Below are positions 10,426 to 64,000 of a stretch of 64,000 nucleotides of DNA, piece by piece. The stretch is taken from NCBI RefSeq assembly GCF_000143415.4, contig NW_003314390.1, forward strand, positions 86,973-150,972, in the 5' to 3' direction. The number at the start of each line of letters is the position of its first letter. The first letter of the stretch is position 1. Made by a program: the position numbers and the translations under genes. Source of the stretch: Selaginella moellendorffii (lineage: Eukaryota > Plantae > Lycopodiophyta). The notes under the pieces are model-generated. The model searched no databases, had not been told where the DNA came from, and saw only the letters and a list, made by a program, of their open reading frames with translations.

Positions 10426-12067
10426 TGTAAGTGACTAATTTTTCCATTTTACTTTAGTCACTTAACCACACCTTTGACCATTTGGAAAAGTCTCACTCAC
10501 AATTTCCATAAGTTCTATTCCAGACTTGGGTATGCTAGCTTTGAGAATGGCATCCCCACCACTCAACCTTTGCACTTGACCAAAATGCTCTATGTATCTG
10601 ATCCCATGACCAACACCCCAAGGTACCACCGACATATTAGCCCGTTACATTAAGGCCATGCCTCTTTACTTTGGTCACACCAGTGGTCTAACACCATTTG
10701 CATCACAGTTCTGTCTCTTAAAGACTGGGCCATCCATCCATGAGTGATCATCTCAGATCCACTCTTTAGCATCTTTAGGATGTCTGTAGGCATGGGGAAT
10801 AGCCTTCCTCAATATCCCTTTTCCAATCCTCAACAAGACCCTTTCTGTCTATGGCCGTGTTGGCTAACACTGCCATTGAATCAAGGCCCATATGCCCAAC
10901 TAGTAAGTCCCATAGTCCTCTGGGATTTCCTCCTCCCATGACCATATCCTTGGTATCTACACCAGAGGATTGCTCCCCTTCTTTTTCACAATCTAGGACT
11001 TTAGGACAACATTTCGAAACACTGTGGCCTTACGCAAGCCTCGTGGGTACTCTCCCCACCTTCCGCCTTTGGGTGCTCTAGCCATGGGCTTAGAGCGAGG
11101 TTCCGTTGAGCCATGCCAGGTATCCAAGTAAGTAGTGCCACCCATACTTGGACTGGGAGCATCGACCATTTGATCTCTCGGGGGAACTATAGCCGGCTCT
11201 TGAACATTTCACCAAGCTACCCTGCTTGTTGGTTTGTATTCACTCTAGTTTTGGACTTCCCAATGGTTATCCCATCACCCAACACTTGGGTATGGGCTTT
11301 TTGGGCCAAACTGGTTTTTCCTGGCCAAACTGGCTCCACTAAAGTCCTCCCCTTTACTATACTTTTGGAGCTCACCAAACCCCCCAGGGTCTGGGAGACG
11401 AACGCTTTGGGCTTTTATGCTCTTAGACTCGAACTCGGACTCAAACTCAGACTCGGACTCAGATTCAGACTCAGACTTGGGTTGGGTTGGGTCTCGGCCT
11501 CGGTCTCGGTCTTAGTCCCAATCCCGGTCCCGGTCTTGGTCTCGGTCTCGACTTTGGACTCCATCTCGGGTCCTTCTAGAACTTCATCTTGGATTCCATC
11601 TCAGGTCCATCTTAGACTCCATCTTAGGTCTATCTCGAACTCCATCTTGGACTCCATTTCGGTCTATCTTGGACTCCATTTCAGACTCCATTTCAGACTC
11701 CATCTTCGTTCCATCTCGGACTCCATCTCGGGTCCATCTCGAACTCCATCTTGGTCCATCTTGGACTCCATCTTGGGTCTATCTTGGACTCTATCTCAGT
11801 CCATCTCAGACTCCGTCTTGGGTCCATCTCGGGTCTATCTCGGACTCCATCTCGAGTCCATCTCGAACTCCCTTTTCTAGATACTCTCTTATGGCTCACT
11901 TTACGCTTGTTCCTTGAGCACTTCGTTGGGAATTCCAATCCTGCTCTTGACCTTTCAAGTCATAGCTTTTAATCCAAATGTGTTACATTTGTTTTGCTTT
12001 TGCTTTGGCCATTACCACATAGCACCTTTTTGGCTCCACTTTGGGACTTAAGGATTTTTATCTCACA
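10426..12067 (-). mobile_element. Solo LTR of family C (same family as 57710-59483), decayed
   Basis: Reverse complement of the 57710 LTR end to end, with TG...CA termini and a perfect TSD TTCAT (10421-10425 and 12068-12072). It includes a decayed GGACTCCATCTC array. Confidence 0.92.
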
Positions 12068-12889: not shown

Positions 12890-13420
12890 TCAAAGTACAT
12901 GTAAAAAGATTATCCATTTATCAGCTTTATATCTTCTTTTGCGATTATGAATTCTTTTAATAAGTGTTATTTCATTGAATAACTTTCGTTTTGATACATT
13001 CCCATCATTATCATCAAATATGTAAACTAATTTTTAAAACATTACTAAAATATTTAATAATATTGAGAATATGAATATGTTAAACACTTATTTGATTAGT
13101 GAATTAAATAATTATTTTAATGGACTCAAGCAGACTCATAAATGCTTATTAAAAGTTTATATATGGCCATTACTCTTGGGGTAGTTGCCCATTTTGGGTA
13201 ATAACAGCCTTACTCAGGTTATTAATAAATTATATACATTTTCAAAAAATTTATATATTATTTATTTTTCTAAGCATATTTAATAGCATATTTGATCTAT
13301 TAAAACTAACCAACTTCTAATATATTAGAACTTAATTATTTATTATTCTCTCATAAAACTTTGCCACTTTGCAGCAAGTTTTCTTGAGAGCAATCTGGCC
13401 CTCTCTCGAATTCCCTTCAA
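12890..13420. repeat. AT-rich dispersed repeat shared with 30095-30670, forming the left edge of the duplication
   Basis: The distal part is loosely similar to 30095-30490. From ~13265 onward it is near-identical to 30500+. Confidence 0.55.
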
Positions 13421-13498
13421 AAGAATAAATCCTAGTTCGCCCACCAGGCCTACACGGCACACCACAGTATTGACATCCAACTCGCAAAAGCTTGAAGC

Positions 13499-13790
13499 TC
13501 ATCTCGTTCTGCCATCCCCCGTTGCTGTCACCAAATCGGCTGCGTCGCCACCGCCTTGCCTGCGAGGTCGATGAGCGAATCTAAGAATCAGATCCTTGAA
13601 TTTTATCGTGTCAAGAATGGGGAAGTCCTGGCTGCGTCGGCGTGCCCGGAGAGGATGAACTCGGATGGAGACGAAGACCGATACAATCTCGATGAGGTGA
13701 TTGGAGAGAAAGGTGTCGCAATCCCTGCCATGAAAGCGTTGCCGCATCAATCTCATTCGCCCTCATTGCAACTCTTGATAAGCTCCTCCC
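13499..13790 (-). pseudogene. Relic of a PPR N-terminus resembling the 774-aa PPR
   Basis: GRDCDTFLSNHLIE matches GRDCDTFLSNRLIE of 7829-10153, then the similarity decays. Confidence 0.65.
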
Positions 13791-13821
13791 TAGAATCCCA
13801 AGAAAAGAGAATATCAAGAAC

Positions 13822-15609
13822 TTAGCTGCCATCGCTAGCAAAAACTCTGGAGAGCGAAAGATAAGCCGAAGAATCGTTGGAATCCACGTCCAGGAGAGCC
13901 ATTGCAGCTCGAGCTTCGCGAATGGGATCGTTGTAAATCCTCGACGCGCTCACCAGGCTCGCTAGCGCAACATCACTGGGCGAAAATGGCATGGAATCGA
14001 TCAAATCCTCCGCAGCTTGGAGCTTCCCAGCGCGGCCGAGCGCATCAACCAAGCAGCAGTAGTGCTCCACCAGAGGTGTCAGCTCAAAATCGAGAATCAG
14101 AGTAACGAAATAGTTCCGGGCCTCGCGAACAAGCCCGATGTGGCTGCAAGCCACCAAAACACTCGAAAACGTCATCTCGTCAATGCGAAAGCCATGAAGA
14201 ACCATGTCGTGAAAGATTCCATGGGCCTCTTGCGGATACCCCTTGTGGGCATATGCCGCGATCATAAGATTCCAAGAGATTATATTCCTCTCCGGAGTAT
14301 CATCGAAGTAAAGCCTAGCTTTCTCAACGTTTCCAACCTCACCATAGACAAATATCATGATGTTCCATGACACGAGATTCCTCTCGGGTATCTTCTCAAA
14401 CAAGTCCTTGGCCAAGGGAATATCCCCGTTCTGGGCATATGCTGTGTACATGGCATTCCAGGTGACGAGATTCTTGCCAGGCATGGTCGCGAATATCCTC
14501 TTGGCATCTTCCAGATCCCCTTCTCTAGATGCGGCCGTTAGCATCGCAGTGTAGGAGTAAACGTTCCTTCTTTCCGGGTTGGACGAGAACATTCGCTGGG
14601 CCTCGTGGTAATGGCCATTCTCCGCGTATCCGACGATCATGGCCGTCCAGCTCACCACATCCCAGCCGCTCATTCGCGCAAACACGGCCTTGGCCTCCTC
14701 GAGGCGGGAATTTTGAATGTAGCTCTGGAGCATGGACGTCCAGGATACAACGCAGCGATCCAACGGCGTGGAATCGAAGAGGGCTTTGGCGTCCGGGAGG
14801 GAGGAAGGGCTCTTGGCCATGGCTTGGGTCATGGCGGTCCAGGAGACGATGTCGAATTGGGGCTGCCGGTAGAAGATCGATTGCGCCTCTTCGATCCGGC
14901 CGCCTTGCGCGTAGGCGGATGCAAGGGCAGTGTAGGACAGGAGATCGCGGTTCTTCATCGAGTCGAAGACGATCTTGCCTTGATCGATCTGGCCGTGGCG
15001 CAGGTAGCCGTGGAGCATCAGCGTCCAGGCGATGTCGTCCTTCTCCGGCATTGCGTCGAAGATCGCCTTTGCGGCTTCCAGATGCCCTCCCAGCACGTAT
15101 TCTTTGAAGATCGTCGTCCAGGAGATGATTCCCCAGAAGGGCATTCGATCGAGAAAGCGTCTGGATTCGTGGAGGAGGCCGCCCAGGGCGTAGGCTCGGA
15201 TCATGATATTCCAGGTGATATCGTCCTTCTGGGGCATGGCATCGAAGAGAGATTTCGTCTCCTCTGGATTCCCAGTGTGGGCAAATGCCGTCAAGAGCGC
15301 GTTCCACAGCACGATGTCCGTCCCCGGCACAAGAAAGAAGAGATTTTTGGCGTCCTGGATGGCGCCGCCGTGGATGCATCCAGTGATCATGTTGTTCCAG
15401 GTGAAGACGTTGCGAGATCTCATCCGGTGGAAGGTCTTCCAGGCATTCTCCACGCTGCCGCATTTGCCGTAGCTGAGGAGCAGGAGATTGGTGAGATAGG
15501 TGTCGTCGCGGAAGCCATTCTCGATGAGCTTGGCGTGCGCGGCGCGGCATTCTGCCAGGCTCTTGATATTTCGGGTGATCGTCGCGAGAAATCTTCGATC
15601 CAAGCTCAT
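13822..15609 (-). CDS. PLS-E class PPR protein (595 aa), copy 1
   Basis: Tandem 31-aa repeats, then TFSSVLVACSHIG...EHYCCLVDALGRAGKL...MPFSP...SSAYLSLS (E domain). Confidence 0.93.
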   Translation of the reverse strand: MSLDRRFLATITRNIKSLAECRAAHAKLIENGFRDDTYLTNLLLLSYGKCGSVENAWKTFHRMRSRNVFTWNNMITGCIHGGAIQDAKNLFFLVPGTDIVLWNALLTAFAHTGNPEETKSLFDAMPQKDDITWNIMIRAYALGGLLHESRRFLDRMPFWGIISWTTIFKEYVLGGHLEAAKAIFDAMPEKDDIAWTLMLHGYLRHGQIDQGKIVFDSMKNRDLLSYTALASAYAQGGRIEEAQSIFYRQPQFDIVSWTAMTQAMAKSPSSLPDAKALFDSTPLDRCVVSWTSMLQSYIQNSRLEEAKAVFARMSGWDVVSWTAMIVGYAENGHYHEAQRMFSSNPERRNVYSYTAMLTAASREGDLEDAKRIFATMPGKNLVTWNAMYTAYAQNGDIPLAKDLFEKIPERNLVSWNIMIFVYGEVGNVEKARLYFDDTPERNIISWNLMIAAYAHKGYPQEAHGIFHDMVLHGFRIDEMTFSSVLVACSHIGLVREARNYFVTLILDFELTPLVEHYCCLVDALGRAGKLQAAEDLIDSMPFSPSDVALASLVSASRIYNDPIREARAAMALLDVDSNDSSAYLSLSRVFASDGS

Positions 15610-15633
15610 GCGCTACCTCCTAGGGTTTGGACG

Positions 15634-16832
15634 ATGCAGCGATGGATCCCCGGCGAGACGCGAGAGCTCCACGCGCGGTGGAAGCGCAAGGCGCTACAGG
15701 TATGGCGCAAGAGCCTCTACCTGGATCGTGTGGTGCGGTGGGACGAGCTGATCTACTCGGAGATCCCCAGAGCCATGGAATTCGTCCAGAGCCAGGGCGG
15801 GAGGATCGACATCAAGAGAATGCCGGCGGAGATGGACGAGGTGAGCAAGAGGAGGATGAGCAAGCTCCTTCGCAAGCACGCCGCGGTGTTTAAGCTCACG
15901 TACAAGCACCACAGGACCCAGGAGTGGATCGAGCTCAGGGATTTCATGCAAGAGATCATGGAGGCCGAGAGGCAGGCGATCCGGGACAGGGATGAGAAGC
16001 TGTCGGTGTCCATCGTGAAGAAAATCTTGATGATGTGCAAGGATCGCAGGGCGCCAGTGACTCCGCTCAAGAACTTGAGCAAAGAGTGTGCCTTCCCTGT
16101 GGATTTTGATGGTTTTCTCCGGAGGTATCCGGAGGATTTCCGGCTAGTCGGGGGATCCAGAATGGTGGAGCTCGTTTCGTGGGATCAGTCGCTAGCCGTG
16201 ACTGACAGAGAAAGGGCTGTGGAGGCAGGAAGAACGCAAAGAATTCTCGGCCCTTGGGCGTTCGTGAGTACGTTTCCAAAGAAGTTCGAGGCGGACAGGA
16301 TTTTCTGGGAGGAATTCGACAAGTTCCAAAGACTTCCAATGCCGTCACCTTACGAAGACCCCGGCAACTCGGCAGATCCAAGCAGTCTGTCTGGAGAGAA
16401 GAGACTCCTGGCAGTCTTTCACGAGCTACTCAGCCTCACGATCGAGAAGAGAGCATCTCTTGCAAAGTTCAAAGGATTCAAGCAGGAGTTGCGGCTGCCA
16501 GAGTACTCAGACGCTCTGCTTGCGAGCCACCCACGGTTTTTCTACGTCTCAGAGAGCAACTCACGCCAGATGGCGTTTCTCCGCGAAGCTTACCGGGAGA
16601 ACGATCGGGTGTCCGTGACAAGAGTAAAGGATCCGCTGGTTACTATAAGGAATCGATACATGGGCCTGCTAAGGGTGGAGTTCAGGGAGCCGCGGGTGAA
16701 AAGGCCTTGTGTATTTAGCACAGATGAAAGCGATAACGAGGTAAGTTGTTGCTCTATATGTTTTCTATCTCATCTTCTGGTTTGTTTGGCCGTTTGCAGG
16801 ATTGTGACACAGACGCCGCAGATATACCATGA
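15634..16832 (+). CDS. PORR (plant organelle RNA recognition) domain protein, copy 1
   Basis: Motifs KKILMM, FPVDF...RYPEDF, VELVSWDQSLAVT, FQRLPMPSPYED, EKRLLAVFHELLSLTIEKR, HPRFFYVS and FLREAY. Intron 16740-16799, last exon DCDTDAADIP*. Confidence 0.88.
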
Positions 16833-17332
16833 ATCGTGGAAGGAGAAAGCGCTCACAAGAGACAGACACTGATCGTTTGAGAAGGTATGTTGCTTATTTC
16901 TCGTTTTCCTTTGCGGGCAGTGATGACGAGGTCTCTAGATGTTTTCTATCTCACCTTTTCGTTTCTTTGGCCTTTGCAGGAATGTGACAAGACGCCGCGT
17001 GGAAGCAGGCATGCGCTCACACGTTGATCGTTTTTCCGGTCATGGGAAGGTATGTTGCTCTTCCTTTGCTGCGAGCAGTGATTGACGTTTGTTGGTTATA
17101 GAAAGCCAAAGCCGCGAGCTCCAAACCTGTTCTTGGAGTGACATCTCTTCGTTACCAAATGACCATTTCAATGCCGCTCGGCGAGAAACTGAGGTTAGTC
17201 GCAACCGGTTTCTAATCTTTTAATTTGGAGATTGTGACAAGGATGATGCAACTTACACTGCCTTGCAGACCGCCCCATTGTGACAGATTCAAGACCACTT
17301 GAAAGCATACAACTTCACAGGATAGGATCGAA

Positions 17333-18508
17333 TCAACGTAGGATAGTGCGATAAGTTCTACATAGCGAAAGAAGAGGACAGTCCCAGCTACATCGTGACA
17401 CCAGGTAGTCGCAAACATCCTTGTGCCAAAACTCCATCACCGATTCCCAGAGGCTGGGAACTCGTTTGGGCAGTGCCACCCTCAGCAAGCCATCGCCAGT
17501 CAAGTTGTAGCTCGCCCTGTCCTCCACATACCTGTGAGGGAAGTAAAGCCTGCGAGCAAACACTTTGGTGCTCGCTCCTCCGCGCTCCAGCCTCACTGCG
17601 TGGCCGCCATCCTCGTCCCGAGCAACGCCGGCTATGGATGCGATGCAACCAGTCCCTTGCGCTTCTCCCATCAGCTTCAAGAACCCGTCGCGCTCCATCA
17701 TGCCCCGGATCTCCCGAGCTGCTGCTGCTGCTTCTTCGCCATCTTTTCCTCCTCCCCCGGACGAGCAAGTGACTTCCACCTGAGCCGACTGCGCGCCAGG
17801 CATCTCCGCGACGATCACGTACGAATCCGGGAGCTCCAAGATGTCCACCAGTGGCGACACTGTGATCACGCTCGGGTCATGGACGCAAGCACCAACTTTG
17901 GTGGCAACGAGAGCTTCCGGTCGGACGAGTCGATCAGCGTTTTCGATGGTGTGGCCCATGGGCGGAGCTCGCAGCCCACGAGCCGTGGAATGAGCCTCAT
18001 CACTCCGAGGCTCCAGCTCCACCAAGTCTTGTACTAGCTCGGATCCTGGAACAAGCGGCACCGTCACCCGCAAGAGACCATTCTCAATCCGGTGGCTGAT
18101 CCTGGCCGCGTCGGCGTGCCCGGGGAGGATGAACTTGCGAGCAAACAGCTTGGTGAAAGCACCGCGATCACGGACGGAGAACTCGGCTGGCTCCTGGTCG
18201 TGGGAGACGCCAGCGATGGAGAGAAGATGAGAGCCCTCTACTGCTTCCACCTTGATTGATACGTCGCTGCTCGCCACTCCTGGCATCTCCACCAGGATGA
18301 GATACGCGCCTTGGAGGCGCACCACGTCGGTGGGAGGAGCCGTCACGACCGTGTCGCCGATGGCGCAAAGGAACGACATCATTGCGTCCTCTACCTCGGC
18401 TGTGGCGTTGGAGGAGCTCCCGCAGCCCCGCGCGTGGACGGAAAGGCCATGCTTGCACGCCGCCACCGCTGCCGTGAAGAGCGCCAACAGCAATAGCGCC
18501 CTTCTCAT
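17333..18508 (-). CDS. Signal-peptide protein with two alpha-crystallin/HSP20 domains, copy 1
   Basis: MRRALLLLALFTAAVAA leader. ACD1 reads PTDVV..VEMPGV...FARKFILP..ISHRIENGLLRVTVP and ACD2 reads VDILELPDSYVIVAEMPG...FARRLYFP...DGLLRVALPK. Intronless. Confidence 0.85.
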   Translation of the reverse strand: MRRALLLLALFTAAVAACKHGLSVHARGCGSSSNATAEVEDAMMSFLCAIGDTVVTAPPTDVVRLQGAYLILVEMPGVASSDVSIKVEAVEGSHLLSIAGVSHDQEPAEFSVRDRGAFTKLFARKFILPGHADAARISHRIENGLLRVTVPLVPGSELVQDLVELEPRSDEAHSTARGLRAPPMGHTIENADRLVRPEALVATKVGACVHDPSVITVSPLVDILELPDSYVIVAEMPGAQSAQVEVTCSSGGGGKDGEEAAAAAREIRGMMERDGFLKLMGEAQGTGCIASIAGVARDEDGGHAVRLERGGASTKVFARRLYFPHRYVEDRASYNLTGDGLLRVALPKRVPSLWESVMEFWHKDVCDYLVSRCSWDCPLLSLCRTYRTILR

Positions 18509-19320
18509 CTTACCCTACATCAAGAGCTTAGCAATTAGGATTATTATAGAAAACGATCGATCAAACCTTACAAAAAGGATTCCAAGTCCTTAAGCTTTCA
18601 GGAAAGGTGTAGGAAAAAACAAGAAAACACGTACCGGCGGCTTGGAAGCTTGTATTACCGAGAAATCTGAGTTCCACTAGATCGATCCTACACAGCCAGC
18701 CGTGATAGAAGAAAAGATTACCCACTGTAAACTTGCGAACTTGGATCCCGTCAGTTGGCGAGAAAGCAGCAGCGTCCATTTTTCCCCACCTCAGCCTCGA
18801 GAGTTTCTTATTTTGTTGGGAGCCCTTGACTTGGATCAGTGGTCGCTTCGCCACCATAAACTCCCTCCTCTTAGGACTCCTGCATGACAAGAAAGGCAAC
18901 ACTTTCCACAGCAAGACGTTTAGATATGCACCTGCCATTTTGCAACGGGTGCTCCCGCCTCATCCATGAATCCTGTGCACCATTTTGACACTGTCAATTA
19001 AGACAAAAGCAAAAGAGAACTCGTCCAACCAAAAACTCACCTTCGACAATGTAGCACCTAATGTAGACTCTCCTGTGTTTAAATGATTCTCGATATCGTT
19101 CAGATTAAAAGCAGGTCGCAAGAAGTTTAAATCTGCCTGACCAGTAAAACGCAGAAACATGCCACTCACCTGGAGTTTTAGCCGTTCTAGTACCAGTATT
19201 TTTCAGACTGCTCTATACTCTGCAATGAACATCGAAAACAAACATACCAGTGATTGCCTCTGTCTTTCTCACGCAGCTTTATTACACTGCCAAAAGAACA
19301 AAAACCAAAAAGAAAAAACG

Positions 19321-29981: not shown

Positions 29982-30675
29982 AGATGGATAGAATCGAATG
30001 AGAGCAGACCATGTGTTTTAAAAAGGTAAAACAAAATCCCTTTCCTATCTTAAACCTAAACTTGTTAAGAAAGGGATGGATTTATCTTTAGGATATATGT
30101 AAAAACCTCATCCACCCAACATTTTTATATCTTCCCTTACATGAAATCTTTCATTCAACATTATTTCATCACGTAATGTTTACTTTAATACATTCCCATC
30201 ATTATTACCATTACCTCAAGGCATCTCTGGAACATTATTAAAATATTAAATATTTTTAAAAACATGAACGTGTTAAACACTTATTTAATTATTCAACTAA
30301 ATATATCACATTTAACTATTTTAATGAACTCAAACTAGTATATAAATATTTGTTAAAAGTTTATGTATGGTCATTATCCTGAAAATGCATTTGTTAGGCT
30401 AGATTGCCCATTCAAGGTAGTAACAACTTTACTTAGGTTATTAATTTATTTATCCATATACATTTTCTTAAAATTATATATTAATTAAAAATTATTTAAT
30501 TTTCTAAGCATATTTAATAGCATATTTGATCTATTAAAACTAACCAAATATTAGAACTTAATTATTTATTATTCTCTCAGAGAACTTTGCTGGTTTGCAA
30601 CTTGCAACTTGGCACTTGCAGCAAGTTTTCTTGAGTGCAATCTGGCCCTCTCTCAAATTCCCTTCAAAAGAATAA

Positions 30676-32161
30676 GTAAGAAATGCACAATACAACACCC
30701 CTCACTCTTACGTGGTTGCCCCTTTGCCACGCTGACTCCTCGCTTCCTCTGTGGTGCGCTTAGTCACGCCCAGCTCTGCACCTTAAATGTTTAACAACTA
30801 ACTCTAAATTAGTAACTTTAAACTTTAATTAGTAGATGTTATTAATGGATATGTTAACGACTATAATTTTATAATTAGCCAGTGAATGAATGGCTATAAT
30901 TTATAAGTATATAACCTACAATTGGTTTAGGTTTTTCCTCATTGTGTTTTATGTTTGTGCTCCTTATATTTTCTTTCTTATTTTATTCATTCTCTTTAGT
31001 ATTATGGCTAGATTGGAATATGTAGATCATGCTCAAGATAGTATTCTTTCTTTTTCTGATCTTATTGATAGAACTAATAGTAAAGTAAATTCTTTTAGTT
31101 TTTGTATTATGGTTGGTCTTCTTCCACAAGAGAGAGAATATGAAAGATGTCATCGACCAATGAGATATCGATCTGATAATCAAGGTTGTAAAGATGGTTT
31201 AAAGTGGAATTGTAAAAATTGCAATACCACAAGATCTCTTAGAACTAATACATGGTTTGCAAATAGTAATCTCACATTTGCTCAAATGCTTAGAATGATG
31301 TATTGTTGGTGCATTAAAATGCCACAAGATCAAGCTCGTATTGAGTGTAGTATTTAAAGTGAGCATACAACAACAAATTGGTATAACTTTTGTCGTGATA
31401 TTTGTGTTATCACATTACAACAAGGTAGTCAAAAGATTAATGGTCCAGGAAGAATTGTGGAAATTAATGAAAGTAAGTTTGGTAAGTGGAAATATAATAT
31501 TGGTAGAAGAGTAGAAGGTCAATGGGTCTTTGGAGGAATTGAACGTGATTCAGATTGAATGTCTATGGTTCCAGTGGCCAATTGTACTACACAAACTTTA
31601 ACTGATATATTATATACATATGTTGAACCAAGTAAGTTCTATTTCTATTATTATTCTTAACTAATAATTATAATTAATTTTTTTAGGAACAATTATATAT
31701 AGTGATTGTTGGGCTGGTTATGTTTCAGAGTGGTTGAATCAATTGAACTTCACTCATCATACAGTCAACCACTCTCAGAATTTTGTTGATCCCATGATTG
31801 GAATTCATACAAATTGTATTGAATTAATATGGAATGCAGTGAAAAAATCCCTTCCTTGCTATGGTACAACAAAAGAATTATATAGCTTTTACTTTCAAGA
31901 ATATATTTGGCGAAAAATATATATTGAAAGAAAGGAAGCTGCATTTAATATTCTATGCAGTCATATTAAGCTATACAATCAAGATAATGCTGTTATAGTA
32001 GAATAAATAATATATTTGATTTTGTACTTTTAAATACTTAAAAATAGTTGAAAATAATATACTAGAACAATCTTTAATTTACAGTAATGAGGTGGCATGT
32101 ATGAGGTGGCAAACGGGGCCCACCCTAAATAAGGGGGAGTGCTGTATTATGCATTCTACCC
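30676..32161 (+). mobile_element. Merlin (IS1016/IS1595-family) DNA transposon
   Basis: 8-bp TSD AAGAATAA (30668-30675 and 32162-32169). Imperfect TIRs share AATGCAYAATACARCAC...TTTGCCAC. The empty site is at 13421-13428. Confidence 0.9.
31004..32006 (+). pseudogene. Merlin/ISXO2-like DDE transposase with a spliceosomal intron and premature stops
   Basis: Zn ribbon (ERC...WNCKNC...SLRTNTWF), GPGRIVEINESKFG, GQWVFGGIER, intron 31632-31686 (GTAAG...TTTAG), TIIYSDCWAGY and HHTVNHSQNFVDP..GIHTNCIELIW. Confidence 0.88.
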
Positions 32162-32236
32162 AAGAATAAATCCTAGTTCGCCCACCAGGCCTACACGGCA
32201 CACCACAGTATTGACATCCAGCTCGCAAAATGAAGC

Positions 32237-32550
32237 TCATCTTGTTCTGCCATCCCCTGTTGCTACCACCAGATCGGCTGCGTCGCCACCGCCTTGCCTG
32301 CGAGGTCGATGAGCGAATCTGCGAATCAGCTCCTTGAATTTTATCGTGTCAAGAACGGGGAAGTCCTGGCTGCATCGGCGTGCCTGGAGAGGATGAACTC
32401 GGATGGAGACGAAGATTTCGCGCGCGCTCTGGGCTCCCGATACAATCTCGATGAGGCGATTGGAGAGAAATGTGTCGCAATCCCTGCCATGAAACCGTTG
32501 CCGCATCAATCTCATTCGCCCTCATCGCAACTCTTGATAAGCTCCTCCCT
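32237..32550 (-). pseudogene. PPR N-terminal relic, copy 2
   Basis: GRDCDTFLSNRLIE...AREIF. Confidence 0.65.
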
Positions 32551-32580
32551 AGAATCCCAAGAAAAGAGAATATCAAGAAC

Positions 32581-34368
32581 TTAGCTGCCATCGCTAGCAA
32601 AAACTCTGGAGAGCGAAAGATAAGCCGAAGAATCGTTGGAATCCACGTCCAGGAGAACCATCGCAGCTCGAGCTTCGCGAATGGGATCGTTGTAAATCCT
32701 CGACGCGCTCACCAGGCTTGCTAGCGCAACATCACTGGGCGAAAATGGCATGGAATCGATCAAATCTTCCGCAGTTTGGAGCTTCCCAGCGCGGCCGAGC
32801 GCATCAACCAAGCAGCAGTAGTGCTCCACCAGAGGTGTCACCTCAAAATCGAGAATCAGAGTAACGAAATAGTTCCGGGCCTCGCGAACAAGCCCGATGT
32901 GGCTGCAAGCCACCAAAACACTCGAAAACGTCATCTCGTCAATGCGAGAGCCATGAAGAACCATGTCGTGAAAGATTCCATGGGCCTCTTGCGGATACCC
33001 CTTGTGGGCATATGCCGCGATCATAAGATTCCAAGAGATTATATTCCTCTCCGGAGTATCATCGAAGTAAAGCCTAGCTTTCTCAACGTTTCCAACCTCA
33101 CCATAGACAAATATCATGATGTTCCATGACACGAGATTCCTCTCGGGTATCTTCTCAAACAAGTCCTTGGCCAAGGGAATATCCCCGTTCTGGGCATATG
33201 CTGTGTACATGGCATTCCAGGTGACGAGATTCTTGCCAGGCATGGTCGCGAATATCCTCTTGGCATCTTCCAGATCCCCTTCTCTAGATGCGGCCGTTAG
33301 CATCGCAGTGTAGGAGTAAACGTTCCTTCTTTCCGGGTTGGACGAGAACATTCGCTGGGCCTCGTGGTAATGGCCATTCTCCGCGTATCCGACGATCATG
33401 GCCGTCCAGCTCACCACATCCCAGCCGCTCATTCGCGCAAACACGGCCTTGGCCTCCTCGAGGCGGGAATTTTGAATGTAGCTCTGGAGCATGGACGTCC
33501 AGGATACAACGCAGCGATCCAACGGCGTGGAATCGAAGAGGGCTTTGGCGTCCGGGAGGGAGGAAGGGCTCTTGGCCATGGCTTGGGTCATGGCGGTCCA
33601 GGAGACGATGTCGAATTGGGGCTGCCGGTAGAAGATCGATTGCGCCTCTTCGATCCGGCCGCCTTGCGCGTAGGCGGATGCAAGGGCAGTGTAGGACAGG
33701 AGATCGCGGTTCTTCATCGAGTCGAAGACGATCTTGCCTTGATCGATCTGGCCGTGGCGCAGGTAGCCGTGGAGCATCAGCGTCCAGGCGATGTCGTCCT
33801 TCTCCGGCATTGCGTCGAAGATCGCCTTTGCGGCTTCCAGATGCCCTCCCAGCGCGTATTCTTTGAAGATCGTCGTCCAGGAGATGATTCCCCAGAAGGG
33901 CATTCGATCGAGAAAGCGTCTGGATTCGTGGAGGAGGCCGCCCAGGGCGTAGGCTCGGATCATGATATTCCAGGTGATATCGTCCTTCTGGGGCATGGCA
34001 TCGAAGAGAGATTTCGCCTCCTCCGGATTCCCAGTGTAGGCAAATGCCGTCAAGAGCGCGTTCCACAGCACGATGTCCGTCCCCGGCACAAGAAAGAAGA
34101 GATTCTTGGCGTCCTGGATGGCGCCGCCGTGGATGCATCCAGTGATCATGTTGTTCCAGGTGAAGACGTTGCGAGATCTCATCCGGTGGAAGGTCTTCCA
34201 GGCATTCTCCACGCTGCCGCATTTGCCGTAGCTGAGGAGCAGGAGATTGGTGAGATAGGTGTCGTCGCGGAAGCCATTCTCGATGATCTTGGCGTGAGCG
34301 GCGCGGCATTCTGCCAGGCTCTTGATATTTCGGGTGATCGTCGCGAGAAATCTTCGATCCAAGCTCAT
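32581..34368 (-). CDS. PLS-E class PPR protein (595 aa), copy 2
   Basis: 8 amino-acid differences from 13822-15609. Confidence 0.93.
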   Translation of the reverse strand: MSLDRRFLATITRNIKSLAECRAAHAKIIENGFRDDTYLTNLLLLSYGKCGSVENAWKTFHRMRSRNVFTWNNMITGCIHGGAIQDAKNLFFLVPGTDIVLWNALLTAFAYTGNPEEAKSLFDAMPQKDDITWNIMIRAYALGGLLHESRRFLDRMPFWGIISWTTIFKEYALGGHLEAAKAIFDAMPEKDDIAWTLMLHGYLRHGQIDQGKIVFDSMKNRDLLSYTALASAYAQGGRIEEAQSIFYRQPQFDIVSWTAMTQAMAKSPSSLPDAKALFDSTPLDRCVVSWTSMLQSYIQNSRLEEAKAVFARMSGWDVVSWTAMIVGYAENGHYHEAQRMFSSNPERRNVYSYTAMLTAASREGDLEDAKRIFATMPGKNLVTWNAMYTAYAQNGDIPLAKDLFEKIPERNLVSWNIMIFVYGEVGNVEKARLYFDDTPERNIISWNLMIAAYAHKGYPQEAHGIFHDMVLHGSRIDEMTFSSVLVACSHIGLVREARNYFVTLILDFEVTPLVEHYCCLVDALGRAGKLQTAEDLIDSMPFSPSDVALASLVSASRIYNDPIREARAAMVLLDVDSNDSSAYLSLSRVFASDGS

Positions 34369-34392
34369 GCGCTACCTCCTAGGGTTTGGACG

Positions 34393-35591
34393 ATGCAGCG
34401 ATGGATTCCCGGCGAGACGCGAGAGCTCCACGCGCGGTGGAAGCGCAAGGCGCTACAGGTATGGCGCAAGAGCCTCTACCTGGATCGTGTGGTGCGGTGG
34501 GACGAGCTGATCTACTCGGAGATCCCCAGAGCCATGGAATTCGTCCAGAGCCAGGGCGGGAGGATCGACATCAAGAGAATGCCGGCGGAGATGGACGAGG
34601 TGAGCAAGAGGAGGATGAGCAAGCTCCTTCGCAAGCACGCCGCGGTGTTTAAGCTCACGTACAAGCACCACAGGACCCAGGAGTGGATCGAGCTCAGGGA
34701 TTTCATGCAAGAGATCATGGAGGCCGAGAGGCAGGCGATCCGTGACAGGGATGAGAAGCTCTCGGTGTCCATCGTGAAGAAAATCTTGATGATGTGCAAG
34801 GATCGCAGGGCGCCAGTGACTCCCCTCAAGAACTTGAGCAAGGAGTGTGCCTTCCCTGTGGATTTTGATGGGTTTCTCCGGAGGTATCCGGAGGATTTCC
34901 GGCTAGTCGGGGGATCCAGAATGGTGGAGCTCGTTTCGTGGGATCAGTCGCTAGCCGTGACTGACAGAGAAAGGGCTGTGGAGGCAGGAAGAACGCAAAG
35001 AATTCTCGGCCCTTGGGCGTTCGTGAGTACGTTTCCAAAGAAGTTCGAGGCGGACAGGATTTTCTGGGAGGAATTCGACAAGTTCCAAAGACTTCCAATG
35101 CCGTCACCTTACGAAGACCCCGGCAACTCGGCAGATCCAAGCAGTCTGTCTGGAGAGAAGAGACTCCTGGCAGTCTTTCACGAGCTACTCAGCCTCACGA
35201 TCGAGAAGAGAGCATCTCTTGCAAAGTTCAAAGGATTCAAGCAGGAGTTGCGGCTGCCAGAGTACTCAGACGCTCTGCTTGCGAGTCACCCACGGTTTTT
35301 CTACGTCTCAGAGAGCAACTCACGCCAGATGGCGTTTCTCCGCGAAGCTTACCGGGAGAACGATCGGGTGTCCGTGACACGAGTAAAGGATCCGCTGGTT
35401 ACTATAAGGAATCGATACATGGGCCTGCTAAGGGTGGAGTTCAGGGAGCCGCGGGTGAAAAGGCCTTGTGTATTTAGCACAGATGAAAGCGATAACGAGG
35501 TAAGTTGTTGCTCTATATGTTTTCTATCTCATCTTCTGGTTTGTTTGGCCATTTGCAGGATTGTGACACAGACGCCGCAGATATACCATGA
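34393..35591 (+). CDS. PORR domain protein, copy 2
   Basis: Protein identical by eye to copy 1. Intron 35499-35558. Confidence 0.88.
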
Positions 35592-36099
35592 ATCGTGGAA
35601 GGAGAAAGCGCTCACAAGAGACAGACACTGAAGGTATGTTGTTTATTTCTCTTTTTCCTTTGCGGGAAGTGATGACGAGGTCTCTAGATGTTTTCTATCT
35701 CACCTTTTCGTTTCTTTGGCCTTTGCAGGAATCTGACAAGACGCCGCAGATATACGATGAATCGTGGAAGCAGGCACGTCGATCGTTTTTCCGGTCATGG
35801 GAAGGTATGTTGCTCTTCCTTTGCTGCGAGCAGTGATTGACGTTTGTTGGGTATAGAAAGCCAAAGCCGCGAGCTCCAAACCTGTTCTTGGAGTGACATC
35901 TCTTCGTTACCAAATGACCATTTCAATGCCGCTCAGCGGGAGACTGAGGTTAGTCGCAACCGGTTTCTAATTTTTTTAATTGGAGATTGTGACAAGGATG
36001 ATGCAACTTACACTGTGGCAGGCTTTCCCTTGCAGACCGCCCCATTGTGACAGATTCAAGACCACTTGAAAGCATACAACTTCACAGGATAGGATCGAA

Positions 36100-37272
36100 T
36101 CAACGTATATAGCGATACGATCTACATAGCGAAAGAAGAGCACAGTCCCAGCTACATCGTGATGCCAGGTAGTCACAAACATCCTTGTGCCAAAACTCCA
36201 TCACCGATTCCCAGAGGCTGGGAACTCGCTTGGGCAGTGCCACCCTCAGCAAGCCATCGCCAGTCAAGTTGTAGCTCGCCCTGTCCTCCACATACCTGAG
36301 AGGGAAGTAAAGCCTGCGAGCAAACACTTTGGTGCTCGCTCCTCCGCGCTCCAGCCTCACTGCGTGGCCGCCATCCTCGTCCCGAGCAACGCCGGCTATG
36401 GATGCGATGCAACCAGTCCCTTGCGCTTCTCCCATCAGCTTCAAGAACCCGTCGCGCTCCATCATGCCCCGGATCTCCCGAGCTGCTGCTGCTGCTTCTT
36501 CGCCATCTTTTCCTCCTCCCCCGGACGAGCAAGTGACTTCCACCTGAGCCGACTGCGCGCCAGGCATCTCCGCGACGATCACGTACGAATCCGGGAGCTC
36601 CAAGATGTCCACCAGTGGCGACACTGTGATCACGCTCGGCTCATGGACGCAAGCACCAACTTTGGTGGCAACGAGAGCTTCTGGTCGGACGAGTCGATCA
36701 GCGTTTTCGATGGTGTAGTCCATGGACGGAGCTCGCAGCCCACGAGCCGTGGAATGATCCTCATCACTCCGAGGCTCCAGCTCCACCAAGTCTTGTACTA
36801 GCTCGGATCCTGGAACAAGCGGCACCGTCACCCGCAAGACACCATTCTCAATCCGGTGGCTGATCCTGGCCGCGTCGGCGTGCCCGGGGAGGACGAACTT
36901 GCGAGCGAACAGCTTGGTGAAAGCACCGCGATCACGGACGGAGAACTCGGCTGGCTCCTGGTCGTGGGAGACGCCAGCGATGGAGAGAAGATGAGAGCCC
37001 TCTACTGCTTCCACCTTGATTGATACGTCGCTGCTCGCCACTCCTGGCATCTCCACCAGGATGAGATACGCGCCTTGGAGGCGCACCACGTCGGTGGGAG
37101 GAGCCGTCACGACCGTGTCGCCGATGGCGCAAAGGAACGACATCATTGCGTCCTCTACCTCGACTGTGGCGTTGGAGGAGCTCCCGCAGCCCCGCGCGTG
37201 GACGGAAAGGCCATGCTTGCACGCCGCCACCGCTGCCGTGAAGAGCGCTAACAGCAATAGCACCCTTCTCAT
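36100..37272 (-). CDS. Signal-peptide double-HSP20 protein, copy 2 (390 aa)
   Basis: Near-identical to 17333-18508, with a small C-terminal indel. Confidence 0.85.
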   Translation of the reverse strand: MRRVLLLLALFTAAVAACKHGLSVHARGCGSSSNATVEVEDAMMSFLCAIGDTVVTAPPTDVVRLQGAYLILVEMPGVASSDVSIKVEAVEGSHLLSIAGVSHDQEPAEFSVRDRGAFTKLFARKFVLPGHADAARISHRIENGVLRVTVPLVPGSELVQDLVELEPRSDEDHSTARGLRAPSMDYTIENADRLVRPEALVATKVGACVHEPSVITVSPLVDILELPDSYVIVAEMPGAQSAQVEVTCSSGGGGKDGEEAAAAAREIRGMMERDGFLKLMGEAQGTGCIASIAGVARDEDGGHAVRLERGGASTKVFARRLYFPLRYVEDRASYNLTGDGLLRVALPKRVPSLWESVMEFWHKDVCDYLASRCSWDCALLSLCRSYRYIR

Positions 37273-38258
37273 CTTACCCTACATCAAGACCTTAGCAATT
37301 ATGATTATTATAGAAAACGATCGACCAAACCTTTTACAAAAAGGATTCCAAGCTTTCAGTGAGCGTTAAGTTGGTGTTAGAAAACAAGCGTACCGATCCT
37401 ACACAGCCAGCCGTGATAGAAGAAAAGATACCCACCTGTAAACTTGCGAACTAGATCAGTGGTCGCTTCGCCACCATAAACTCCCTCTTAGGACTCCTGC
37501 ATGACAAGAAAGGTAACACTTTCCACAGCCATTTTGTTACCTGCCGTTTTGCAACGGGTGCTCCCGCCTCGTCCATGAATCCTGTGCACCATTTTGACAC
37601 TGTCAATTAAGAGAAGAGAACTCGCCCAACCAAAAGCTCACCTCTACTGTGTAATGCCATCCTTTAATAATTCTGCTGCACAGGAGCACCACTTGGTCTT
37701 ACTCGTCTTGGAAGGGCTTGTTGCACACCTCCGAGCAAATCCTTTTGCTCTAACCACGACGGTCCTCGTCGACAAACCAGACGTGTTCCAGGAACCATGG
37801 TATGTGTGGTTGCATATACAACCAAAGAGTGTCCGCCTAAGGCAGCACGCTTGTCAAGGATAGGGGACCTAATCTGGGATATTGGGACGGGCATAGGGTC
37901 GCCTTGCTTAGCGGCATGGGAACTGAGAAGAAGGAGCAACTAGCACGGATAGCAATGAACAAGCTGGCAGAGAATGTTCAAACCTCTACTGACGGTCGTG
38001 TGTCTCGAATAGCTGCAATGTTGTGCCGAAAGAGAAGTGTGGAATGATAAGTTGATTTCTATTTTGTCTCTTCAATGCTCTTCTTCCAGTCGGCACTTTA
38101 AGAGTTACTCAATGTTATACTCTCTGCCAATGGAGGACAAGACTCAGTCGGCAGAAACATTGCTTGCAATATACTTGAACTTCCCCACTGCTAACTAACT
38201 GAGCCGCTAAAAAAGAACAACTACAGTTCAGAATTATGTGAGGTATGCTTCTCTGGGA

Positions 38259-57709: not shown

Positions 57710-60700
57710 TGTGAGACAGAAAATCCCTAGGCCCCAAAGTGGAGCCGGAAGGGCGCCACATGGTAGTGGCCGAAGCGAGAGCCAAACGAGCGTAACACGT
57801 TTGGACCAAAAGCTCCGACTTGAAAAGTCAAGAGCGGGAGTGGAACTCCCAACGAAGTGCCCGAGGAACGAGCACGAAGCGAGCAAAAGGTGAGGCTCCA
57901 AAAAGGGACCCAAAAGGACCAACACATGACACATGGGAGTGTCCGAGATGGACTCGAGTTGGAGTCCGAAGTGGAGTCCGAGATGGACCCGAGTTGGAGT
58001 CCGAAGTGGAGTCCGAGGTGGACCCGAGATGGACCCGAGTTGGAGTCCGAAGTGGAGTCCGAGATGGAGTCCGAGATGGAGTCCGAGATGGAGTCCGAGG
58101 TGGACCTGAGATGGACCCGAGTTGGAGTCCGAAGTGGAGTCCGAGATGGACCCGAGATGGAGTCCGAGATGGAGTCCGAGGTGGACCCGAGATGGACCCG
58201 AAATGGAGTCCGAGATGGAGTCCGAGATGGACCCGAGATGGAGTCCGAGATGGACCCGAGATGGACCCGAGATGGAGTCCGAGATGGAGTCCGAGATGGA
58301 GTCCGAGATGGAGTCCGAAGTCGAGACCGAGACCGGGACCGAGACCGGGACCGAGACCGAGACCGAGACCGAGATCGGGACCGAGACCGAGGCCGAGGCC
58401 GAGACCGAGCCCGAGCCCGAGTCCGAGTCCGAATCCGAGTCCGAGTCCGAGTCCGAGTCCGAGTCCGAGTCCGAGTCCGGAGCCTGAGAGGGTGAAAGCC
58501 CAAAGCGTTCGTCTCCCAGACCCTGGGGGGTTTGGTGAGCCCCAAAAGTATAGTAGGGGGAGGACTGCAGTGGAGCCAGTTTGGCCAGGAAAGGCCAGTT
58601 TGGCCCAGGAAGGCCAGACCCAGTGTTGGGTGATGAGCTGCCCACTGGGAAGTCCAAGACTAGAGTGAACACGGACCGACAAGCGGGGTAGCTTGGTGAA
58701 GTGTTCAAGAGCCGGCTTTAGTTCCCCCGGGAGATCGACTGGCCGATGCTCCCAGTCCAAGTGTGGGTGGCACTACCTACTTGGATACCTGGTGTGGCTC
58801 AATGGAACCTCGCTCTAAGCCCATGGCTAGAGCACCTAAAGGCGATAGGTGGGGAGAGTACCCAGGTGGCTCGCGTAAGGCCACGGTGTTCCGAAATGTT
58901 GTCCCAAAGGCCCAGACTGTGGAAAGGAAGAGGAGCAGTCCTCTGGGGTAGTGACCAAGGACACAGTCATGTGGTGAGGAAGTCCCAGAGGATCGTGGGA
59001 CTTAGTGGTCGGGCCTGTGGGCCTCGATCCAGTGGCAGTGTTGGCAAACACGGCCAGGGGCAGAAAGGGACTTGGTAGGAACTGACAAAGGGACTTTGGG
59101 GAAGGCAATTCCCCAGGTCTGTGGGCATCCTAAGGATGCTAAGGAGTGGATCCAGGATGACCACTCGTGGACACATGGCCCAGTCTTGGAGAGACGAGGT
59201 GGTGATGCAAGTGGTGTTGAACCACTAGTGCAGCAAAGGTGAATGGGCATGGCCTTAGCGTAACGGGCCGAGATGTCAGTGGTACCTTTGGGTGTCGGTC
59301 TCGGGACCGGACACGTGGGGCACTTGGACCAGGTGCAAGTGTGGAGTGGCATGGATGCCATTCTTGGGGCTAGCAAGTCCCAAGTCCTAAATTGGACTGA
59401 TGGAGGTTGTGAATGAGACTCCGCCAAGTAGTCGGAGGTGTGGTTAAGTGACTAAAGTAGAATGGAAAATTTAGTCGCTTACAATTTGGTATCGGAGCTG
59501 TTCCTTAGTCCGACTTTTATTGGTGCTCAAGTATATCACCACTGGTGTTGGCATCGGAAGGTCCGAGGAGTGGGCCTATCCTTGAGGAGTGGCAAGTCGG
59601 GAAGACATGGCTCTCCATTACAGTTCATGTGTGAACTTGTAGACGAGGTGGTGGATAGAAAAGGGCCAATAATGGAACGACTTTGGGATCTTGGGAACAG
59701 TGCAAGGTTTTCCTCATTGAGTTGAGGATGTGATTCGGATGAGCATTTGTCTCAGCAAATTGGCTTAGGTTGTTGTGGTAAACAACTAAAGTTGGGATCA
59801 CGGGAAAGATAGAGACTCCAAAACAATAAAGGAGTCACAAGATTATCCTCATATAGTTGAGGTTGGTGCTCATGAATGTGAGACCAAAGGTAATGACCGT
59901 GGAAGGTCAAATACGGAAGAGGACTCAAGTCCTTGAAATGGTAGCCGGGGCTACCTCTAATAAATGTTGGAACAACCCAAGGAGTTGGGGGTGTATTAAG
60001 TGGATGAGTTGGTATTCTCATCACATGGACAAGTAGTCCTAAGGGGCAAAGGTTGCCCCCAGAGAACAAAATCAAGTGTCGGAGTAACACTTGTGAAAAT
60101 AGTCCTTTTGAGTAGGACTGGAATGCAAGAAGGGTATTCCAGTGAGCTAGTGCCTCACAAGTAGAACCTTACGGGTCTGTGGATTAACCAAGTCCAAAAC
60201 TGCTGGATGACTCAAGTAGAGTCAAGCGATGGTCCTAAAAGGACTGATGGAAGCATTTGGACTGAGGTGTGTTGTACCCCACAAAGGATGGGGGGGATCA
60301 TAAGATCCAAGGATGAGAACAGAGGGTATCTCATCGATGGCAAAATGTGCCATGCTAAAGTTATGGGAAAGGTGTTCCCAGAAGAAAACAACTTTGACAT
60401 AAAGTTGTGTATGACCTCTATGGGGCAGTGCTAATGGATGGTTGGCATGAGAAAGAGCGGTGTTGGTCTTGGCAAAGACTTAGACACAAAAGGGAAATGT
60501 CATAGAGGTAGGCTCGTGGAGCCGATGGTGTGGAGACACCAAATGTGCCAAGGTGTGATACCTTGAGGCTATGTTGGTGGGTTCATGAGAACCCCTTGCC
60601 AAAGGAATCCTAATGGAAATGGGAATGGCATAGCCTAAGCGGTAGAGCATGCAGTTGGAGTGCGGTGACCCAGATAATGATGGAGGTGTGCAAGCACCAA

Positions 60701-63700: not shown

Positions 63701-64000
63701 GCTCCAAAAAGGGACCCAAAAGGACCAACACATGACACGTGGGAGTGTCCGAGATGGACTCGAGTTGGAGTCCGAAGTGGAGTCCGAGATGGACCCGAGT
63801 TGGAGTCCGAAGTGGAGTCCGAGGTGGACCCGAGATGGACCCGAGTTGGAGTCCGAAGTGGAGTCCGAGATGGAGTCCGAGGTGGACCCGAGATGGACCC
63901 GAGTTGGAGTCCGAAGTGGAGTCCGAGATGGACCCGAGATGGAGTCCGAGATGGAGTCCGAGGTGGACCCGAGATGGACCCGAAATGGAGTCCGAGATGG
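57710..64000 (+). mobile_element. Young family-C LTR element, LARD-like (no recognisable gag/pol); 3' LTR runs off the window
   Basis: 5' LTR 57710-59483, PBS TGGTATCGGAGC at 59487, PPT GGGTGGTGGAGT and 3' LTR from 63516 (about 3 mismatches in the first 240 bp). Confidence 0.92.
57936..58480. repeat. Compound minisatellite inside the family-C LTR (11-13-mers GATGGAGTCCGA / GATGGACCCGA, then hexamers GAGACC and GAGTCC)
   Basis: Seen directly. Also at 63744-64000, 57330-57610 (decayed) and 11425-11870 (decayed, reverse). Confidence 0.95.

Follow-up and report, generated by a model that had tools for sequence, protein, structure and literature searches.

A Merlin-1_SMo transposon copy with a putative short intron in its transposase gene in Selaginella moellendorffii

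A transposase-bearing element lying among plant genes of S. moellendorffii, with a coding region that is split by a short GT-AG segment, raises the question of whether plants harbour a lineage of Merlin, the eukaryotic kin of IS1595/IS1016, and whether the gene of such a lineage has acquired an intron. We examined this question in a stretch of 64,000 nucleotides (hereafter the window) that contains the element in full. Our main reading, to which we assign a probability of roughly 0.85, is that the element belongs to the Merlin-1_SMo family of S. moellendorffii, as a non-autonomous copy killed by mutation. The family and this exact copy are already known, and what is modestly new is an overlooked, putative short intron that relatives lack.

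Element ends and the empty paralogous site

A direct read of the window, together with a comparison of the flanks, places the element between two exact copies of an 8-bp target site duplication (TSD), and its ends form imperfect terminal inverted repeats (TIRs):

30668..30675, no strand: left TSD copy, AAGAATAA, 8 bp
30676..32161, plus strand: TSD-bounded element of the Merlin-1_SMo family, 1486 bp
30676..30749, plus strand: left TIR, imperfect, with a core of about 55 nt, alignable to about 74 nt; starts GTAAGAAATGCA
32089..32161, minus strand: right TIR, ending ...TGCATTCTACCC; its reverse complement starts GGGTAGAATGCA
32162..32169, no strand: right TSD copy, AAGAATAA, 8 bp

The length, TSD and imperfect TIRs described in an earlier, sequence-only reading of this DNA are thereby borne out. 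Local alignment of the left end with the reverse-complemented right end runs over about 70 nt with small indels and scores 49, above every shuffled version (19.2 +/- 3.6, maximum 35). The ends have a G+C content of about 50%, the interior 28% and the element overall 31%, against 55% in the host flank. Members of the Merlin superfamily are recognised by a DDE_Tnp_IS1595 transposase, a TSD of 8 or 9 bp, TIRs of 24-462 bp and a conserved terminal 5'-GG (PMC8101967, citing Feschotte 2004). The window element carries the domain, an 8-bp TSD and TIRs; its right end reads GGG on its own strand, while its left end reads GT where GG is canonical. According to the supplement text of the same paper, two sibling copies begin with GG and GA, have the ends G[G/A]AAGAAATGCA...TGCATTCTACCC, and are flanked by 8-bp TSDs of other sequence, GAGGAGTC and GCCTACGC. 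By self-BLAST there is no second copy of the element within the window. The same comparison displays a dense ladder of matches at 11540-11875, 57940-58490 and 63747-64000, which look like satellite-like tandem arrays, inverted between about 11.5 kb and about 58/64 kb.

The insertion site has an uninterrupted counterpart in a second, paralogous block of the window:

13421..13428, no strand: uninterrupted target site with a single AAGAATAA, in the paralogous block
12990..18586, plus strand: duplicate block A, without the element (self-BLAST)
32170..37352, plus strand: duplicate block B, right of the insertion (self-BLAST)
32584-34368, minus strand: PPR gene, block B
34393-35628, plus strand: PORR-domain gene, block B
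36103-37272, minus strand: HSP20-domain ORF, block B

The left flank with one AAGAATAA recurs at 13395-13428, differing at 1 of its 34 nt, and is followed directly by right-flank sequence; shuffled versions of this 34-nt query find no match in the window. Self-BLAST pairs 12990-13428 with 30184-30675 and 13421-18586 with 32162-37352, and the two pairs overlap by exactly the 8 bp of the TSD, so that the empty site claimed at 13421 is upheld. Over 13429-18586 and 32170-37352, the blocks differ by 76 substitutions in 5132 aligned sites (1.48%, indels excluded), comprising 47 transitions and 29 transversions with a symmetric spectrum. Since the divergence is only 1.48%, the insertion is younger than the duplication, or the last homogenisation, of this block of about 5.6 kb. 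The insertion site lies some 420 bp downstream of the PPR stop codon, and the PPR, PORR and HSP20 genes in the block B flank identify its surroundings as ordinary plant nuclear DNA. We also noted, immediately to the right of the element, a 96-aa ORF (32294-32584 versus 13550-13690), in which block A has a 21-nt gap relative to block B, and which probably represents non-coding sequence flanking the PPR gene on its 3' side.

The empty site would lose its value for dating if the two blocks were two haplotypes placed in tandem, one of them with a heterozygous insertion, or if the element had been precisely excised from block A. A divergence as low as that observed is compatible with the former, as we take it to be close to that of the two haplotypes in the S. 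moellendorffii assembly. The assembly indeed holds two haplotypes (PMC3095285), and the insertion junction string is found once among the 110 S. moellendorffii contigs of the published survey discussed below. However, the window is free of N gaps throughout its 64 kb, and the 11 kb that separate blocks A and B are not repeated after block B (self-BLAST). Moreover, about 230 bp left of the site (12990-13260 versus 30184-30500) the identity of the blocks, until then about 98.5%, drops to about 75% and indels become numerous, which is unlike alleles and could mark either the edge of the duplication or that of a gene-conversion tract. As for excision, a footprint normally stays behind when a DDE cut-and-paste element leaves, and none is seen in block A, which keeps one clean AAGAATAA. 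We thus consider both variants distinctly unlikely. If the insertion post-dates the duplication, as we prefer, it follows that a working transposase existed recently.

The transposase gene, its relatives and the published family

The coding region of the element is laid out as follows:

31004..31631, plus strand: transposase exon 1 (zinc-ribbon/HTH and first catalytic Asp), broken by two stops
31355-31357, exon 1: first stop, TAA
31466-31468, exon 1: first catalytic D changed to N (VEID>VEIN; relatives read VEIDESKFG)
31556-31558, exon 1: second stop, TGA, at a CpG
31632..31686, plus strand: putative spliceosomal intron, 55 nt, phase 1, GTAAGT...TTTTTAG, acceptor TTTTTTTAG
31687..32006, plus strand: transposase exon 2, with a DDE_Tnp_IS1595 match above cut-off
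31704-31706, exon 2: second catalytic D, kept (SDCW)
31821-31823, exon 2: catalytic E, kept (HTNxIE)
32004-32006, exon 2: terminal stop codon

We searched this region as its uninterrupted pieces, P1 (31004-31354), P2 (31358-31555), P3 (31559-31630) and P4 (31689-32003). In a profile search of the kind that the sequence-only reading had proposed, P4 matches Pfam DDE_Tnp_IS1595 (PF12762) with 30.9 bits against a cut-off of 27 (E 3.3e-7), and the NCBIfam model transpos_IS1595 with E 1.7e-7, which is below that model's cut-off (31 versus 75 bits). P1, P2 and P3 have no family match in Pfam or NCBIfam because these pieces are too short or too decayed, and their identity rests on their BLAST collinearity with full-length relatives. 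This collinearity is strict: P1-P4 follow one another along full-length ISXO2-like proteins, and in one of these (P0076) they align with residues 27-123, 125-190, 192-215 and 217-319, so that exactly one residue is skipped for each stop and one at the P3/P4 junction. The assignment to an ISXO2-like DDE transposase of the Merlin/IS1595 superfamily therefore holds, as do the reported VEID>VEIN change and the stop codons. Given the two stops and the N in place of the first catalytic D, the window copy, which has neither an open frame nor an intact D-D-E triad, is unable to make a D-D-E protein. We further observed a T-rich, acceptor-like stretch (...ttctctttag, 30990-31003) 4 nt before the transposase ATG, and the gene might carry a 5'-UTR intron as well.

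An exhaustive search with P4 returned 3153 relatives at E<=1e-3. Those with names come from animals, namely Mytilus and a pseudoscorpion, and are described as 'ISXO2-like transposase domain' proteins; the rest stem from metagenomes and Logan assemblies. The 150 best of the 3153 are mostly metagenomic or Logan proteins. The window element has the zinc-ribbon/HTH plus DDE_Tnp_IS1595 architecture in common with animal Merlin (Mytilus P0006, Cordylochernes P0001), with 50% identity over exon 2 and 66% over the piece containing the first catalytic D. It differs from animal Merlin in two extra residues after the W-x-G-Y motif, which S. kraussiana relics also have. With bacterial IS1595 elements (IS1016/ISXO2-like, ISEc75) it shares the DDE_Tnp_IS1595 catalytic domain and the 8-bp TSD, but it resides in a eukaryotic host, has a putative intron and has longer, imperfect TIRs.

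Some of the relatives deserve a separate remark. Two Merlin genes of Mytilus galloprovincialis (L003:2001-3032 and L004:2001-3032) encode an identical 343-aa product, lie about 20 kb apart and are each nested antisense in the span of a glycoside-hydrolase (MGH1-like/GH63) gene model. Merlin relics with 49-58% identity to exon 2 are also found on two contigs of ENA 'metagenome' assemblies, L001 (2.1 Mb) and L002 (104 kb), the latter with a frameshift inside the region matching P2; both contigs are presumably eukaryotic.

Bacterial IS1595 contamination, or a recent transfer from bacteria, deserves mention because bacterial IS1595-family transposases are detectable with exon 2 at 35-37% identity (plasmid tblastn). 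Yet the element is closer to animal Merlins (50-66% identity per piece), sits between the PPR, PORR and HSP20 plant genes of a gap-free contig, is missing from the paralogous site, contains a GT-AG interruption and belongs to a set of about 110 genomic hits. Contamination or a recent bacterial transfer is thus extremely improbable, and the earlier conclusion that the element is a genuine resident of the plant genome stands.

Its novelty does not. Merlin-1_Smo of S. moellendorffii is catalogued in Repbase, and in a tblastn survey S. moellendorffii, S. kraussiana and S. tamariscina all yielded Merlin, with no hint of contamination (Lopes et al. 2021, PMC8101967). The sequence-only reading had allowed that prior cataloguing would lower the novelty only, and this is the situation encountered. 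The S2 Appendix of that survey lists 110 S. moellendorffii contigs, the third of which, NW_003314390.1_116976_119629, has flanks, TSD and interior identical to those of the window copy, its first bases corresponding to window position 30005. The published Merlin-1_Smo copies are thus the same family as the window element and include literally the same copy. The exon-1 protein of the window copy differs by about 10% from the copies listed there. The survey states that no functionally active copy is present, the DDE domain being truncated and none complete.

The 54/55-nt interruption

The split of the transposase by a 55-nt GT-AG segment, as claimed from the sequence, is confirmed at 31632-31686, and in the sibling NW_003314411.1 the segment is 54 nt long. 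Inside it lie an in-frame TAA and, about 27 nt ahead of the T-rich AG acceptor, a branch-like CTAAT motif; it is situated at a CAG|G proto-splice site. Introns of Selaginella are short. Removing the segment restores the frame and yields exact collinearity with five intron-less relatives (P0076, P0115, P0078, P0045 and P0117), and in a MAFFT alignment the split codon corresponds to the glycine in a conserved P-G-T motif that closely precedes the second catalytic Asp. By sequence comparison, the interruption thus combines GT-AG borders with a frame and collinearity that are restored on its removal, as a spliceosomal intron would. We regard the comparative support for an intron as strong, short of proof of splicing.

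Relatives are uninterrupted at this point. P0006 (Mytilus), P0076 and P0012 are each encoded by one ORF, of 1032, 1140 and 912 nt respectively, without intron, and L002 has exactly 30 codons between its P2 and P4 matches, where the window copy has 30 codons plus 55 nt. Within Selaginella, at least five S. kraussiana contigs read straight across the junction (...GTTGAAAAAGGTAGTACTATTTATAGTGACTGTTGG, translated V-E-K-G-S-T-I-Y-S-D-C-W), and the single S. tamariscina relic examined is continuous there apart from a 1-nt frameshift. Among the 110 S. moellendorffii contigs, 27 contain the SDCW string of the exon-2 start and 10 an unbroken longer string that reaches across the acceptor into the start of exon 2; none contains the single intron-less junction string that was tested. 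Because the segment is absent from the S. kraussiana and S. tamariscina relics and from the animal and metagenomic relatives, the putative intron looks lineage-specific, gained at the CAG|G site within the S. moellendorffii family.

As to where the segment came from, an origin by tandem duplication of adjacent coding sequence is unsupported, whether it is compared with the end of exon 1 (P 0.23) or the start of exon 2 (P 0.46). Most of it (31637-31686) aligns with an exon-1 segment, 31048-31098, in which 37 of 52 columns match (score 22, shuffle P about 0.005; 1 of 111 natural 55-mers reaches that score). We treat this likeness, which by eye is weaker in the less-decayed sibling, as probable chance in T-rich sequence. 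The intron sequence is found nowhere else in the 64-kb window, which consequently holds no sign of an 'introner'-type repeat.

The same segment could in principle be a disabling insertion that became fixed in the copy ancestral to all those of S. moellendorffii, after which the family, left without a transposase of its own, spread by other means or not at all. Relatives without the insert are what any insertion would predict, and Lopes et al. (PMC8101967) found no complete DDE domain. Such an insertion would, however, have had to arrive with a consensus GTAAGT donor, a branch-like motif and a T-rich acceptor at a CAG|G site, and to be removable with exact restoration of the frame and of the P-G-T motif. 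The frequency of the SDCW and acceptor-spanning strings, with the tested intron-less junction in no contig, also speaks against it. So does NW_003314411.1, in which exon 1 is open (a 218-aa translation is given in PMC8101967) and is followed by the 54-nt segment and an exon 2 that, read by eye, is open as well. Finally, an insertion younger than the 1.48%-diverged duplication implies a transposase that worked recently. We therefore hold a disabling insertion to be very unlikely and retain the intron as the preferred reading.

An intron would also account for the truncation reported in the literature. According to CD-search, three of four example proteins in PMC8101967 are C-terminally incomplete. 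Three of the four end in ...EP/LGKFYFYYYS, which is translation into the putative intron, and the remaining one ends immediately ahead of the junction; that paper nowhere uses the word 'intron'. As three of the listed proteins read into the putative intron, the published truncation of the DDE domain is most simply explained as an artefact of translating without splicing.

Mutation load and proposed history of the copy

The sequence-only reading had also held that the copy suffered heavy G>A/C>T damage after it inserted. We compared siblings by eye and by counting short diagnostic strings in the supplement text of the 110 contigs, with the following counts:

First stop TAA: 1 contig, the window copy alone; alternative AAA in 30
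Second stop TGA (CpG): 4 contigs; alternative CGA in 7
Catalytic D>N: 5 contigs; alternative GAT in 36
C46Y: 8 contigs
A193T: 3 contigs
E22D, G145N, H164I and F184S: 1 contig each, the window copy
Donor-adjacent G>A: 1 contig; alternative in 4
Three exon-2 string windows: 1 contig each; alternatives in 7, 2 and 9

Whichever lineage carries the change, copies differ mostly by C>T/G>A, and of the 15 exon-2 differences that separate the window copy from NW_003314411.1, 12 are C>T/G>A in the direction of the window copy (eye count). Another sibling, NW_003314291.1, is a deletion derivative without exon 2. The damage of the window copy thus appears to be a mix of inherited and private changes, where the sites common to several copies reflect either identity by descent or recurrent C>T. 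Of the earlier claim, the part concerning the first stop and several substitutions is compatible with these counts, since they are private, whereas the D>N change, the second stop, C46Y and A193T are shared with other contigs.

One could still suppose that the element arrived intact and acquired all of its damage in place, as a silenced element subject to unusually rapid C-to-T decay. The private status of the first stop, E22D, G145N, H164I, F184S, the donor-adjacent G>A and the three exon-2 windows among the 110 contigs would fit such a course, as would the directional exon-2 differences set beside the symmetric spectrum in the host flanks. The shared changes listed above fit it poorly, and the private exon-2 load of about 4% (by eye) compares with about 0.74% per lineage in the flanks. 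When a cut-and-paste element moves, its mutations move with it, and no donor has to remain; the private load can therefore have been acquired elsewhere than at the window site, and private mutations date the split from the siblings, not the residence at the site. We consider decay wholly in place unlikely, if to a lesser degree than the alternatives above, and favour a mixed origin of the damage, in which case the window copy may well already have lacked catalytic activity when it inserted, having been moved in trans.

The following history would accommodate these observations. After the local block of about 5.6 kb had been duplicated or last homogenised, the element would have arrived by cut-and-paste through a DDE transposase, with a staggered cut at AAGAATAA repaired into the 8-bp duplication. 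The transposase gene of the family would consist of two exons split by the 54/55-nt phase-1 GT-AG intron in the glycine codon of P-G-T, and splicing, if it occurs as the comparison suggests, would yield a full D-D-E protein of about 315 residues. The window copy itself could have been mobilised in trans by the transposase of a sibling recognising its conserved ends, and its decay by C>T/G>A transitions would be that expected of methylated, silenced repeats, the bias presumably being driven by methylation.

Both the intron gain and an insertion younger than the 1.48%-diverged duplication suggest recent activity of the family over an ancient relic. A more inclusive proposition is that Merlin-1_SMo was active very recently and possibly still is, that its intron was gained in the S. 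moellendorffii lineage, that at least one copy (NW_003314411.1) has both exons open and that the 'truncated DDE domain' is artefactual; taken jointly, these points remain tentative, and we would place them slightly below even odds.

The window copy carries little weight in itself, being one more dead member of a catalogued family. A modest corrective value lies in the observation that the only published survey of plant Merlin found no complete Selaginella transposase, apparently because a short intron was overlooked. The putative intron gain and the young insertion bear on how DNA transposons may adapt their genes to the splicing machinery of the host.
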